The translations under genes and the position numbers were made by a program. Below, piece after piece: positions 21,818 to 28,513 of a stretch of 64,000 nt of DNA; the stretch's first letter is position 1; each line of letters starts with the position of its first letter. The stretch is from Schizochytrium sp. TIO01 (Eukaryota; Protista; Bigyra: Labyrinthulomycetes), in assembly GCA_004764695.1 (NCBI GenBank), contig SMSO01000031.1, forward strand, positions 1,898,436 to 1,962,435. The letters are read 5' to 3'. Under the pieces are notes generated by a model. That model worked only from the letters and a program-made list of their open reading frames with translations. It made no database searches and was not told the DNA's origin.

Positions 21818-24800
21818 TTATGTCTTGATATTATGAATAAGATTGTCGAAACGACGATAGGTGTCACCAAGTGCACTCTGTATCTCACGCTTGAAAGACT
21901 CCGAAGCCTCCTCTTCTGTCATCTCCATGGAAAGTTTTTGACAAAGATACAATATCGAGTCATCGGAAGTGAGCTCAGGCATTCCTGCAGGAATCATAAG
22001 TCGAAACAGATTCACTAAAGTGTGTCCGTGACGGCGCAGGATATTGTAAGCGCGGCAACACAACTTGACAAACTCCATAAAAGTCTTATCGTTCTTGCCT
22101 CCCATCACAGCAGCCATCTCTTTTGTAAAAACAAATGCAGTACGCTCACGTTTCACACCATACTTCGACTTAAAATGCCCTAAAAAGTGACCAAAATCAA
22201 TGTGAAATAGCCGACCGTCTCGATTGAGCATAATATTGTCTGAATGCCGGTCACCAATTCCTAGGACATAGGTTGCTACAACGTAGCCAGCACAGCTACG
22301 CACAAAACGGTCCCGCACCTCTTTGAAATTAGTGCCCCCACGATTATTATCTTGTAGCCATTCATACAAGGTACGTGATGATAGAGCACCAAGCTTACCA
22401 TGCCTTTTCTGAATGTTTGCTGTAGTTTCAGAATTAGTTACTACTTCAATCATTCCGAGCTCATCACCGGTTGAAACACATCGATACGGGGACATACACA
22501 TGTCTAATCCATCTTCCAACCACATCCGGTCCATGAGACGAATCATTTGCAGAGTCATTTGATCTTGCCGCAAGTCATCACCAGCCTTGAACATGAGCAA
22601 CATTGGCTCTCCTCCTCCCTCTGCAGGGTCAACGCTTGAGAATTTGAGCCAGAGAGGCCGTTTTTTTGAGTTCATTACTTTGCATTCGCGGACCTGTAGC
22701 TTTCGGACCACAATCCGCGGATCGAGACAAAGCTGGAAGCTCCCTGGAAGCTGCTCAGATACGTGTGACAGCTCGTTCTGAGCAAAGGCATGCCGTTCTG
22801 CCCGGGATGAGCTTTTGTGACGTTGCACAGCATCAGCCACCTCTTTGAGAAGGTTTTGAACGTCAACCTCCTGACTAAGATCTTGACGATGCGCTGGACT
22901 TGCGAACTCAAGATAAACTCGCAGAATCAGGCCAAAGCGAGGCCTCACGCGAGGTTTATGCATTTCCGAGCGCAAACTCCAGAAAAGTTTGGTGCCAATT
23001 TCGCGCGGGCTTTGCCAAGATCTTCGAAGCAAGAAACGGACAAGAAATGACTCATGATAGGGTTCGTACTTGATAGCTTGCGTAAGCTGGATAAGAAGCT
23101 CTCCAAGATCTTCGTTCGTCAGTGGTTCTAGACAGCGAACTGCATATTCACGCACACGCACGTCGCCATGAGAACAATCTAATAGCTCGAGGGCTTCCAT
23201 TGGCGTTGGTGGTTTCCACTGCCCTGCAATCTCTAAGGCCAAGTCGCGTTCCTTGCGATCACACCAATTTACAGCATACATAACTCGTGCTAGAGCGTAG
23301 GACAATCCAATCAGCTTTTCACGATCTTGCCAAAGAGACTTAAGTGATTCGCGCGGTAGTTGGTAAAATCTAACGGGGTCCATTAGCAAAACTCTTCTCG
23401 TTTCGGGACTCACACTTGATGGGATACCCATGTCCTCCGCTCTTGACTTGGGATGTTTGCCAAACTTGCTGAACTTGCTATCTCCTCCGACCATCGCAGC
23501 AGCAGCGCCAGAGAGCTTGAAGCGTGTTAAGAGGCCGCCCTTTTTTGTTTTCTTTCCTGGTGTAGAGTTTGCATCGTCTTTAGCTGCCCAATCTGCCGTG
23601 CTTGCTGCGTCAATCGTACCACTTCTCTTTGCTGCATCGCTGTCTTCACTTCGCTCAATCACACTCCTGCTACCTGTCAAATCTGGTCCGATCATTTTTA
23701 AGCGGATTGGAGGCGGGAGTCTGAAAAACATTGGTTTAAGGAAGTCCTCAAGTTCAATCACGAGACGGGCTTGGTCCGGAAACTTGGAGACAAGGTTCGT
23801 ACAAGCCAATCGCTTTTCGCCCTTGTGTCCAGCCCATAGGAGAACCGCCTGTCGGCCGGCATTGAAAATGTGGCGTTGATTAAAGATTTGCAATGATGCG
23901 CCAGCAACTACGCCGGTGTTCAATTCAGGCACAAGAGCACCTGCGTTCATAGCAGCGTTGAGGTCTTGATTGGACCCTCCTCCTACGCTTGTTGCCCAGG
24001 CCAATGCCGACAGGTCAGCAATAGATGATGCCGTGGCGCTAAGCGAGGGTCCTGTGGGTGAGGTGGCCCCAGAAGCTGCATTTGACATTTGAGAGCCTCC
24101 AATAGATGTAGCTGAGCTAACGGGCACAGCCTTTGATAAAGCTGAGGCATCGTATAGAGTAAAACACAACCGCGCTGTGAGAGGTAAACGTTCAAATGTT
24201 GTTTCAAAGGAGATCCATTGATCAATTCGGATTGGTGCATTCTTATCTTTTCCACGAAGTTGCACAACGCGTGTCTCCAAGACTTGAGCGGCGTACACAA
24301 GTTGAACTCTAAGTAGAAGGAAACCAGTCAAATCGTACTGGGAGCCTGGGGGGAATAAGAGACCCTCAATGCCAATCAAGTGCACGCGCAAGGGCCAAGA
24401 GCCCTCACTTGGAATTTGTTCTGAACGATCAAGACGAACCCACGTTGGTTCCACAGAAATGGCCTCGCGAGTGATCTCTCGCATAATTCGCATCCACTCA
24501 TCAGGAGGTATGCTTGGTTTACCAGGCGTGGCCATGGACACAGAAATATCCTCGTGGTCAGATTCAGTTTCGGGAAGTGGAGGCGGGGGAGGCGGGCTTA
24601 GTTCTTGCGAGTCTTGGTGCTCTGCAATGGCGGGCCGGCCGACAAGAGCGGCGGTGCCAGGCCCCTCCACGGTCTGAGGCGGCCCTGGCAACATTTCATG
24701 AGACGACATTGAGGAAGCTGAACTCATGGATAAAGTTCTGGCGCTGCCTCGGGCTCCACCTACAGAGCGCAAAGGCATAGATTGACCAAATCTACGCTGG

Positions 24801-27800: not shown

Positions 27801-28513
27801 CACCATTGGACGTCATTCGAGGGTCGCACATAGAGCTCCTGGCCTTCATCAAAGGAAAGCTGTCGCGGGTTTTCGCTCCTAAACGGATACAACGCAACTG
27901 CCAGCTGCAGCTCGTCGCTTTCATCTGCATCATTAGCCTCATCTTCCTCGTTGTAGTCTTCGTCTCCATATTTCCGCCCAGACCCTGATTTGGAGCGCCA
28001 AGATTTTCTCATCGACGCCGACGATTCGGGGCTCATTTGATTTCTAGCTTGTTGATGCTGAATGTCATCTTGTATCGAGGCAGCACTGGGTCTTCGTAGA
28101 CGACTTTGTGAGCGTGCTGTTGCCCTACGATCTGCGTTGTGAGCGTCGGAGCTTCCTCGCGCCCGCACGCCATAGTAGGCCTCGATGTTGTTTGATATAT
28201 CTTCATCCTCCTCATCCGAGAGAACCTCAAGAGCTCCAGAACTGCGCGCTGTCTGCAAACTTGCGAGATCTCTGGGAGTCCATTCGAGTGGCTTGAGCTT
28301 GAGGTAATCCTTGGGTAGAAATCCAGACACTCCATTTAGATTTGCAGGCCACCAGTCCTTGTTATCACGAGGACTCACAAGTACCACGTCACCTGCCTTG
28401 ATAGAGAGGATATTACGGTCCTCGTTGCCGGTAAAATCGTACAATGCCACAGCCCAGCGATCGTCAACTGGTGGCGGAGCGTTCATTGCATCCGCCTGTG
28501 CTGACGGGTCCAA
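21818..28513 (-). CDS. Class I-like phosphoinositide 3-kinase with N-terminal 3xSH3 and 3x cyclic-nucleotide-binding domains, then RBD, C2, helical and catalytic domains
   Basis: Uninterrupted 2231-aa ORF. Catalytic motifs MNSKKRPLWL, FKAGDDLRQD, SCAGYVVATYVLGIGDRHSDNIM, FHIDFGHFLGHFKSKYGVKRER. Helical domain motifs VREYAVRCL, LIQLTQAIKYE, LFWSLRSE. Three SH3 signatures (ALYDF..WW..G.lP.dY) and three cNMP signatures (FGE...). Confidence 0.96.
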   Translation of the reverse strand: MDPSAQADAMNAPPPVDDRWAVALYDFTGNEDRNILSIKAGDVVLVSPRDNKDWWPANLNGVSGFLPKDYLKLKPLEWTPRDLASLQTARSSGALEVLSDEEDEDISNNIEAYYGVRARGSSDAHNADRRATARSQSRLRRPSAASIQDDIQHQQARNQMSPESSASMRKSWRSKSGSGRKYGDEDYNEEDEANDADESDELQLAVALYPFRSENPRQLSFDEGQELYVRPSNDVQWWFAELDGETGMIPYNYVQLVAEQDEIGIEDNSGDELAGNELVGDEVDEYLDVPPPPGQEEHQEDQEQHVRLIAPRAVTVSEDEDDGIDHLVDDEDDEDDEEGEEDDDEEDDLIKMGSGENLLREQNGSIRKLRSHMSRRSSVQMDGAVAVCQYDFVGRERGELSINKGDFLWVDAVDGIEWWMARNDSGQAGIVPRNYVKLIKVEQAAAASPEQAQNHQQNITSNNNNSNSPGATTTTPPSTLSVNRYDNKPNSANSAMLAPGDTRFDAQREHLDLHLENLMFFIILRFGRPNEDISVLDLARESCPFIVKVLGDGEVVQSERSLQDPTLFIVLKGHIDMSHREARLRSVRAGQWFGESLALEQSSPVPATYRTHGPCTVLSLSRESYNEFVAQAPGFAAELKHMASYRSSEILGRLDLFQRLSVASLKLLGALFHFRKYNADEVVYREFDPTRQLFVIVHGRVHISRGNRFVGEGEYFGESSFLKGHPREETAVATEETVMIILDSKDLGSFIECVEEAAPMFADFVWRKSANALRKIPFFESVPQDQLEKVAQMCKYRTFATDEIIVRAGDPGTDFYVIESGRVRVEVPTGGGTEAMATATAAGMRGGTKMGQSRRMDIEARRRAFANSKSPSPTPQTALPPSSTAAGGSPMKYVYMGENEYFGEIAVLASEPRSATVRVMEGPCRCLILDGAGFRNFLTDCPQIKRDVVEKVTRRLRQASPEMRNTIKRSSRNLSLTHMDGSRDLSRLASSGSLNDASYASSNRSSSLSFQNEANEIEWITAPVDSLANIPNNEREIEDEELEDAINVFSRVGDCMLDCHFIYECWPIYMHPSSRPDLWGAQTDVYIKLIGVDMQMRETTIKSHTDDTVADVVDKAFQMADKMGCFIDPVGGPGVFALKVKSRNDFLVYRDVPLRQYKYIAANCNAGRRNHITLALVDLRRPPSSNGSGVHALSFLRQKNTPGRKHTSQIEPSHTRSVSMGQADLDSSLQKQQQLLQNQRRFGQSMPLRSVGGARGSARTLSMSSASSMSSHEMLPGPPQTVEGPGTAALVGRPAIAEHQDSQELSPPPPPPLPETESDHEDISVSMATPGKPSIPPDEWMRIMREITREAISVEPTWVRLDRSEQIPSEGSWPLRVHLIGIEGLLFPPGSQYDLTGFLLLRVQLVYAAQVLETRVVQLRGKDKNAPIRIDQWISFETTFERLPLTARLCFTLYDASALSKAVPVSSATSIGGSQMSNAASGATSPTGPSLSATASSIADLSALAWATSVGGGSNQDLNAAMNAGALVPELNTGVVAGASLQIFNQRHIFNAGRQAVLLWAGHKGEKRLACTNLVSKFPDQARLVIELEDFLKPMFFRLPPPIRLKMIGPDLTGSRSVIERSEDSDAAKRSGTIDAASTADWAAKDDANSTPGKKTKKGGLLTRFKLSGAAAAMVGGDSKFSKFGKHPKSRAEDMGIPSSVSPETRRVLLMDPVRFYQLPRESLKSLWQDREKLIGLSYALARVMYAVNWCDRKERDLALEIAGQWKPPTPMEALELLDCSHGDVRVREYAVRCLEPLTNEDLGELLIQLTQAIKYEPYHESFLVRFLLRRSWQSPREIGTKLFWSLRSEMHKPRVRPRFGLILRVYLEFASPAHRQDLSQEVDVQNLLKEVADAVQRHKSSSRAERHAFAQNELSHVSEQLPGSFQLCLDPRIVVRKLQVRECKVMNSKKRPLWLKFSSVDPAEGGGEPMLLMFKAGDDLRQDQMTLQMIRLMDRMWLEDGLDMCMSPYRCVSTGDELGMIEVVTNSETTANIQKRHGKLGALSSRTLYEWLQDNNRGGTNFKEVRDRFVRSCAGYVVATYVLGIGDRHSDNIMLNRDGRLFHIDFGHFLGHFKSKYGVKRERTAFVFTKEMAAVMGGKNDKTFMEFVKLCCRAYNILRRHGHTLVNLFRLMIPAGMPELTSDDSILYLCQKLSMEMTEEEASESFKREIQSALGDTYRRFDNLIHNIKT

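Follow-up and report, generated by a model that had tools for sequence, protein, structure and literature searches.

Can a cyclic nucleotide act directly on a phosphatidylinositol 3-kinase (PI3K)? PI3K and cyclic-nucleotide signaling rank among the best-studied second-messenger systems. To our knowledge, the two meet in known biology only indirectly, through PKA, Epac or G protein-coupled receptor (GPCR) routes, and a PI3K that carried cyclic nucleotide-binding (CNB) domains in its own chain would turn a cyclic nucleotide monophosphate (cNMP) signal directly into PI(3,4,5)P3 (PIP3). The question is raised by a 64,000-nucleotide stretch of the labyrinthulomycete Schizochytrium sp. TIO01 (the window; contig SMSO01000031.1, positions 1,898,436 to 1,962,435 of the forward strand), which carries a long open reading frame (ORF) on its minus strand at 21818-28513. 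We analyzed its domains, relatives and genomic setting, and conclude with high confidence that it is a real intron-less gene, and a single one, for a class I-like PI3K with its regulatory modules (three SH3 and three CNB domains) in the same polypeptide. On whether cyclic nucleotides directly control the activity or localization of this enzyme, analogy with other CNB-gated proteins makes us lean slightly towards yes.

A single gene for SH3, CNB and PI3K domains

The ORF list of the 64-kb window gives a sole ORF at this position, with 2231 codons when counted from the earliest possible start. A stop-free frame of 6.7 kb at ~49% GC is far beyond chance. Its first ATG, at 28486, lies ten residues ahead of the first SH3 domain and gives a protein of 2222 residues, identical to one called earlier on a public 8.1-kb contig (P0001).

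The full-length protein and eight segments of it were each compared with Pfam profiles at their curated cut-offs. Every SH3, CNB, Ras-binding (RBD), C2, helical and kinase domain exceeded its cut-off (22.9 bits for PF00018, 27.5 bits for PF00027 and 22 bits for PF00794; Table 1). The first-pass annotation of this DNA had read three SH3, three cNMP-binding, an RBD, a C2, a helical and a kinase domain, in that order, in one stop-free ORF. Pfam confirms this, the Pfam positions converted to DNA agree with the earlier coordinates within ~30 bases, and the strings quoted then are present (FALKVKSRNDFL...PLRQYKYI at residues 1127-1151 and KSKYGVKRER at residues 2105-2114). All three SH3 domains pass the PF00018, PF14604 and PF07653 cut-offs, and their ALYDY, WW and P-x-x-Y ligand-groove motifs are readable. 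The RBD was modeled with AlphaFold2 (AF2) as a beta-grasp fold (predicted local distance difference test, pLDDT, 76-92); taken alone, it gave only weak matches in the PDB (E 0.4), all to the RBD of p110 delta, which agree with the assignment but do not decide it. It is the sole PI3K_rbd match in the genome. A p85-binding domain (ABD) was looked for in the whole protein, and no PF02192 match was found at E up to 0.1.

Four runs, each from a different study and guessed to be RNA, gave contigs that were aligned to window positions 23450-29449. All were colinear with the window, with neither joints nor indels within the coding sequence. Three of the four (7.5-7.9 kb) span ~21.2-21.4 kb to 28.7-29.3 kb in record coordinates, which corresponds to the ORF and its flanks. 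In run X7, the PI3K contig stops at 29319, and the next one (2344 nt, at twice the depth) begins at 29349 and matches the divergent ORF at 29378-31630, while in run X2 the adjacent piece has one-fifth of the depth. The contig of run X4 (10.6 kb) continues through the intergenic region into the neighboring gene and therefore says nothing on transcript ends. Contig ends close to the gene borders, combined with a change in depth, are the pattern of transcript assemblies; as the RNA status of these runs is a guess, the pattern is suggestive only. The gene probably has one transcript. Among the strain differences listed within the ORF, 17 of 28 are synonymous and the 11 non-synonymous ones lie mostly in linkers; in the CNB domains all four are synonymous. 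The third-position bias of these differences extends along the whole frame.

Relatives in one clade share the architecture

The nearest named protein is a 'Phosphatidylinositol 3-kinase, putative' of Hondaea fermentalgiana (GBG30282.1 / A0A2R5GHA8), an orthologue that shares 75-93% identity in the domains (kinase 91-93%, helical 88%, RBD 82%, CNB-3 75%) and 40-61% in the linkers. The kinase identity marks the window as thraustochytrid DNA (Labyrinthulomycetes, stramenopiles). Its database model (1514 aa) begins in the middle of CNB-2 and is without SH3 domains and CNB-1; public annotation therefore hides these domains. With such a start, the model is almost certainly truncated at its N-terminus. 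A homology search with the CNB-RBD region, in which candidates were selected by words, retrieved the identical protein and the Hondaea orthologue and, besides these, only CNB proteins that are unrelated; it was uninformative on distribution. Among the best 120 PI3K matches (1222-3888 aa), 22 contain PF00027.

A maximum-likelihood tree of the helical and kinase region was built by a quick search without class II references, rooted on the Vps34-like gene of the genome and used for clades only. The SH3-CNB-PI3K proteins form a single clade of 13 (support by the Shimodaira-Hasegawa-like approximate likelihood ratio test, SH-aLRT, 99), nested in a group that includes the PH-domain PI3Ks of oomycetes (support 98). 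The domains of the 13 members were mapped with profiles made from the window protein's own domains. All full-length members share one order (two or three N-terminal SH3, three CNB, RBD, C2, helical and kinase domains), and at least ten full-length relatives, with 45-58% kinase identity, have it in single proteins. The domain map and the tree thus agree on conservation of the design within one clade. Five members (P0005, P0006, P0011, P0012 and P0013) have an additional SH3 domain between RBD and C2, at the place where the linker of the window protein and of Hondaea, of which just 40% is identical, has a poly-proline run. In the window protein, this run is a possible SH3 ligand.

P0013 (KAH9253398.1, BASA81_008749) is filed under the chytrid 'Batrachochytrium salamandrivorans' and is a full SH3-CNBx3-PI3K protein placed deep within the stramenopile/marine clade. 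A loss of class I/II PI3Ks has been reported for fungi (PMC4617754). It seems likely that the assembly is contaminated or mislabeled.

No paper describing a CNB-containing PI3K was found in the literature searched, which leaves out most subscription journals, and the evolutionary survey of Philippon et al. (PMC4617754) reports none. The novelty put forward in the first-pass annotation stands, within that search, as regards published description; it does not as regards the architecture itself, which already lies in public protein sets as unnamed or generic predictions such as GBG30282.1.

The kinase core is intact and class I-like

Aligned to p110 delta, the window protein keeps the ATP-lysine motif, the catalytic loop and the DFG motif intact (Table 1). 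Its activation loop reads HFKSKYGVKRER, compared with NFKTKFGINRER in p110 delta, with two basic boxes, KRER included. This alignment supports the earlier view of an intact kinase with a basic, class I-like activation loop. The catalytic motifs and the KRER box are near-invariant across the SH3-CNB-PI3K family. The best solved relatives are p110 beta, alpha, delta and gamma (E ~1e-120 against the p110 isoforms), and the best 60 of 130 PDB matches are all class I (E 1e-121 to 1e-116). In the Protein Atlas, class I clusters reach a feature score of 0.86 and class II clusters one of 0.82, a lead only; generic class I/II PI3K clusters only were found there, and no large cluster with CNB and PI3K.

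Basic activation-loop boxes have been tied to the use of PI(4,5)P2 by published mutagenesis, and class II enzymes too have a basic K-R-x-R box. Lineages of the SAR group (stramenopiles, alveolates and rhizarians) have an undivided 'class I/II' PI3K whose grouping with class I is unsupported, and all non-opisthokont class I/II proteins have the same four domains (PMC4617754). Since the published tree leaves the SAR sequences as class I/II, we call the enzyme class I-like and not a class I member. The first-pass annotation had proposed a class I-like enzyme that makes PIP3: the RBD-C2-helical-kinase order and the motifs agree with the class I-like part, strict class I membership goes beyond the published tree (PMC4617754), and the basic activation loop, being of class I type, makes PIP3 the likely product.

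The CNB module and its predicted nucleotide sites

An AF2 model of residues 505-960, built on a 16-row alignment, shows three beta-barrel-plus-helix units (mean pLDDT 77, >85 in the barrels; predicted template modeling score, pTM, 0.66). Compared with the PDB by Foldseek, this module has Plasmodium PKG as its top match (E 1e-24), followed by PKA-R, the tandem CNB domains of PKG I, and Epac2; the Foldseek probability is 1.0 for PKG and PKA-R. The model supports a fold like that of tandem PKG/PKA-R CNB domains. The segments first proposed as cNMP-binding have thus withstood both profile comparison, with PF00027 above its cut-off, and structure comparison.

In the phosphate-binding cassette of such domains, Glu contacts the ribose 2'-OH and Arg-Ser/Thr-Ala contacts the phosphate. 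The cassette of CNB-3, FGEIAVLASEPRSATV, departs nowhere from the canon (Glu895, Arg904), and Hondaea has the identical one. CNB-2 is atypical, keeping Gly-Glu and Arg with Glu-Glu after the Arg instead of Ser/Thr-Ala, and CNB-1 has Val-Pro in place of Arg-Ser/Thr. Within the window protein, CNB-3 alone has the canonical nucleotide-contact motif. Arg-Ser-Ala by itself cannot separate cAMP from cGMP, as CAP and HCN use Arg-Ser/Thr for cAMP and PKG uses Arg-Thr for cGMP.

All three CNB domains have canonical cassettes in P0006, P0012, P0014 and P0029, as do at least two in P0054, whose third reads FGD. Because these deeper relatives have canonical cassettes, the ancestral protein probably had three working nucleotide sites, of which the window lineage would keep at least one.

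Other CNB-bearing PI3Ks and cyclic-nucleotide genes

The genome (64 Mb, 37 contigs) was searched for related genes. Just three combine a PIK helical domain with a PI3K-type kinase: the window gene, a Vps34-like gene (L002) and a gene for a 1365-aa protein (G000:C24:3490870-3494964, equal to L001:2371-6465, + strand). The latter has the order WW, cNMP-binding, GAF, C2, helical and kinase, with a canonical CNB cassette and without an RBD. Both non-Vps34 PI3Ks of the genome therefore have cyclic-nucleotide-type sensor domains. In the tree, this paralogue belongs to a second clade of seven WW-CNB(-GAF) PI3Ks (support 97), with P0060, P0062, P0095, P0098, P0106 and P0108.

A third small clade of CNB-PI3Ks (P0041, P0043 and P0120), without SH3 or WW domains, stands elsewhere in the tree, which means that CNB-PI3K fusions either arose repeatedly or are old and were lost many times. 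At least three clades of CNB-bearing PI3Ks are thus present in public data.

Matches to cyclase domains number at least 20 in this genome, and those to PTEN_C2 number 3-5; dozens of long ORFs together contain at least 113 matches to the cNMP domain. Its repertoire of cyclic-nucleotide sensors is very large, with many fusion partners. Such wide use of CNB domains supports active cNMP signaling in the organism and makes any single fusion less singular.

A proposed mechanism and its alternatives

As a whole, we moderately favor a single-chain class I-like PI3K gated in cis by its CNB module. By analogy with CNB domains acting in cis in PKG and Epac, the nucleotide-free module would keep the lipid kinase in a low-activity state or off the membrane. 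Binding of cAMP or cGMP would lift this restraint, in this species chiefly at CNB-3, which adjoins the RBD and has the sole full Glu/Arg cassette. The RBD would contribute an input from Ras-family GTPases, and the SH3 domains would recognize partners rich in proline or the poly-proline stretch between RBD and C2 of the same protein, standing in for a separate p85 adaptor, which only animals and their close kin have. The predicted product is PI(3,4,5)P3. A single chain would in this way integrate cNMP, Ras and proline-ligand inputs, as the first-pass annotation had suggested.

Several points weigh against cis gating by cyclic nucleotides. Cyclic-nucleotide binding and the activity of the enzyme are both predictions from the sequence. 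With CNB-1 lacking the cassette Arg and CNB-2 atypical, two sensors of the three may be silent here, and CNB domains can bind other ligands, a nucleoside-binding kinetoplastid PKA-R being among the Foldseek matches. An AF2 model of residues 765-1175, from CNB-3 to the RBD, shows folded domains joined by a disordered linker (pTM 0.37); there is no confident packing of CNB-3 on the RBD and hence no autoinhibitory interface to be seen. The published phylogeny does not divide stramenopile enzymes between class I and class II (PMC4617754), and the runs that serve as transcript evidence are guessed to be RNA. Finally, cNMP domains are joined to very many partners in this genome, and their mere presence is therefore weaker evidence of a special link to PI3K.

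Three other explanations were considered. The one that we take most seriously, while still holding it to be unlikely, is that the gene and its architecture are real and the CNB domains have lost the ability to sense cAMP or cGMP in this species; they would serve a structural, dimerizing or autoinhibitory role or bind another small ligand, and control would lie mainly with the RBD and the SH3 domains. The Val-Pro of CNB-1, the Arg-Glu-Glu of CNB-2, the disordered insert of ~59 residues that interrupts CNB-3 and the fold match to a kinetoplastid PKA-R that binds nucleosides and not cAMP all fit this explanation. It sits less well with the fully canonical CNB-3 cassette that is identical in Hondaea, the three canonical cassettes retained by relatives, the strain differences in the CNB domains, which are all synonymous, and the many cyclases encoded in the genome. 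Somewhat less probable again is an enzyme that is regulated by cNMP and is class II-like or of an ancestral 'class I/II' type, making mainly PI3P or PI(3,4)P2 on internal membranes and not PIP3 at the plasma membrane. A basic K-R-x-R box also occurs in class II enzymes, our tree contained no class II reference sequences, and the published phylogeny keeps the SAR homologues undivided, with no support for their joining class I (PMC4617754); on the other side stand the solved relatives, of which the best 60 of 130 are all class I, the close match of the activation loop to p110 delta and alpha, the presence of PTEN-like genes and, as a lead only, the higher Atlas score for class I (0.86 versus 0.82).

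We reject the explanation that the long ORF is an artefact, either of reading through neighboring genes, one for an SH3/CNB protein and the other for a PI3K, or of a chimeric assembly, and consider it very improbable. The Hondaea model without SH3 domains and CNB-1 could be taken to favor it, as could the guessed RNA status of the supporting runs. The Hondaea model begins in mid-CNB-2, however, and hence is itself truncated, and an artefact would have to accommodate a 6.7-kb frame without a stop, the same domain order in single proteins of at least ten relatives with 45-58% kinase identity, the colinear contigs of four studies without joints, and a third-position bias of the strain differences along the whole frame.

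Comparison with known PI3Ks and cyclic-nucleotide-regulated proteins

The closest likeness of the catalytic part is to class I enzymes without a p85-binding domain, mammalian p110 gamma and PI3K1/2 of Dictyostelium, which share with the window protein the RBD-C2-helical-kinase order, the catalytic motifs, the KRER loop and the lack of an ABD. Unlike these, the window protein has ~1,000 additional N-terminal residues with three SH3 and three CNB domains and no separate adaptor implied, and it falls in a stramenopile clade beside the PH-domain PI3Ks of oomycetes. With p85/p110 of class IA it has in common an SH3-type adaptor input and a PI3K catalytic core, but its SH3 domains are covalently built into the catalytic polypeptide and come without SH2, BH or iSH2 domains.

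The sensor part resembles that of Plasmodium PKG, with its four in-cis CNB domains, of which one is degenerate: in both proteins, tandem CNB domains, a mix of canonical and degenerate ones, lie N-terminal to the catalytic domain. The output differs, being lipid kinase activity in place of Ser/Thr protein kinase activity; a pseudosubstrate is not expected, and an autoinhibitory contact is only supposed. With Epac, a cAMP-regulated guanine nucleotide exchange factor (GEF) for Rap, the window protein shares CNB domains in cis with a catalytic region and a Ras-association-type domain, while its catalytic activity and domain order are different; gating by steric occlusion is Epac's.

The architecture is thus made of known domains and follows a familiar logic of regulation in cis, and it is conserved and uncharacterized. 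That cyclic nucleotides are the primary direct switch of 3-phosphoinositide signaling in labyrinthulomycetes and related marine stramenopiles is a tentative proposal, which we put somewhat below an even chance. If true, a cyclic nucleotide acting on the PI3K itself would take the place of the receptor-p85 and G-beta-gamma-p101 routes that animals use, and would account, in this lineage, for the regulation of 'class I/II' PI3Ks without a regulatory subunit. Class I regulatory subunits and p85 homologues are limited to animals, choanoflagellates and ichthyosporeans, and it has been called puzzling that class I/II catalytic subunits trace to the last eukaryotic common ancestor while the regulatory subunits are recent (PMC4617754). 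The SH3, CNB and GAF modules in cis would be a concrete and testable answer to this puzzle for stramenopiles. A directly cNMP-gated PI3K would surprise specialists and would make the regulation of non-opisthokont class I/II PI3Ks open to experiment. Thraustochytrids are culturable and transformable. A compact cNMP-gated PI3K could also be a chemogenetic tool or, combined with light-activated cyclases, an optogenetic one.

Features of the PI3K gene and its surroundings

Table 1 Features of the PI3K gene, with positions in the window.
Feature	Residues	Position	Strand	Evidence and remarks
Complete coding sequence, 2222 aa + stop, single exon		21818..28486	-	ORF list and translation; identical protein P0001; no joints or indels in the contigs of four runs
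SH3-1	11-63	28298..28456	-	PF00018 39.2 bits, PF14604 42.3 bits; ALYDF, WW and P..Y motifs readable
SH3-2	197-247	27746..27898	-	PF00018 40.6 bits
SH3-3	380-429	27200..27349	-	PF00018 42.7 bits
CNB-1	520-640 (Pfam 541-622)	26567..26929; cassette 26687-26737	-	PF00027 38.8 bits; motif reading, cassette without canonical Arg; AF2 model
CNB-2	645-761 (Pfam 666-742)	26204..26554; cassette 26315-26368	-	PF00027 59.0 bits; motif reading; AF2
CNB-3	765-950 (Pfam ~790-930)	25637..26194; cassette 25763-25810	-	PF00027 61.6 bits, two stretches; cassette canonical (Glu895, Arg904)
Disordered insert of CNB-3, ~59 residues, splitting the beta-barrel	821-879	25850-26026	-	pLDDT <50 (AF2)
Ras-binding domain	1060-1170 (Pfam core 1083-1166)	24977..25309	-	PF00794 29.5 bits
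Poly-proline stretch, RBD-C2 linker	1297-1306	24569..24598	-	Motif scan
PI3K C2, with low-complexity insert	~1402-1590	23717..24283	-	PF00792 45.8 bits, two stretches
Helical (PIK) domain	1694-1868	22883..23407	-	PF00613 (PI3Ka) 135 bits
Kinase domain	1964-2173	21968..22597	-	PF00454 (PI3_PI4_kinase) 213 bits; alignment to p110 delta, E 5e-83
ATP-Lys motif, K-x-GDDLRQD	1965-1975	22562-22594	-	Intact (alignment to p110 delta)
Catalytic loop, GIGDRHSDNIM (DRHxxN)	2076-2086	22229-22261	-	Intact
DFG motif (HIDFGHFLG) and activation loop	2095-2099 (DFG motif)	22124-22204 (DFG and activation loop)	-	Intact

Upstream of the PI3K gene, ~860 bp of intergenic DNA (28514-29377) separate it from a divergent ORF of 750 aa on the plus strand (29378-31630). 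The boundary between the X7 contigs, which falls between these divergent genes, suggests a shared bidirectional promoter region.

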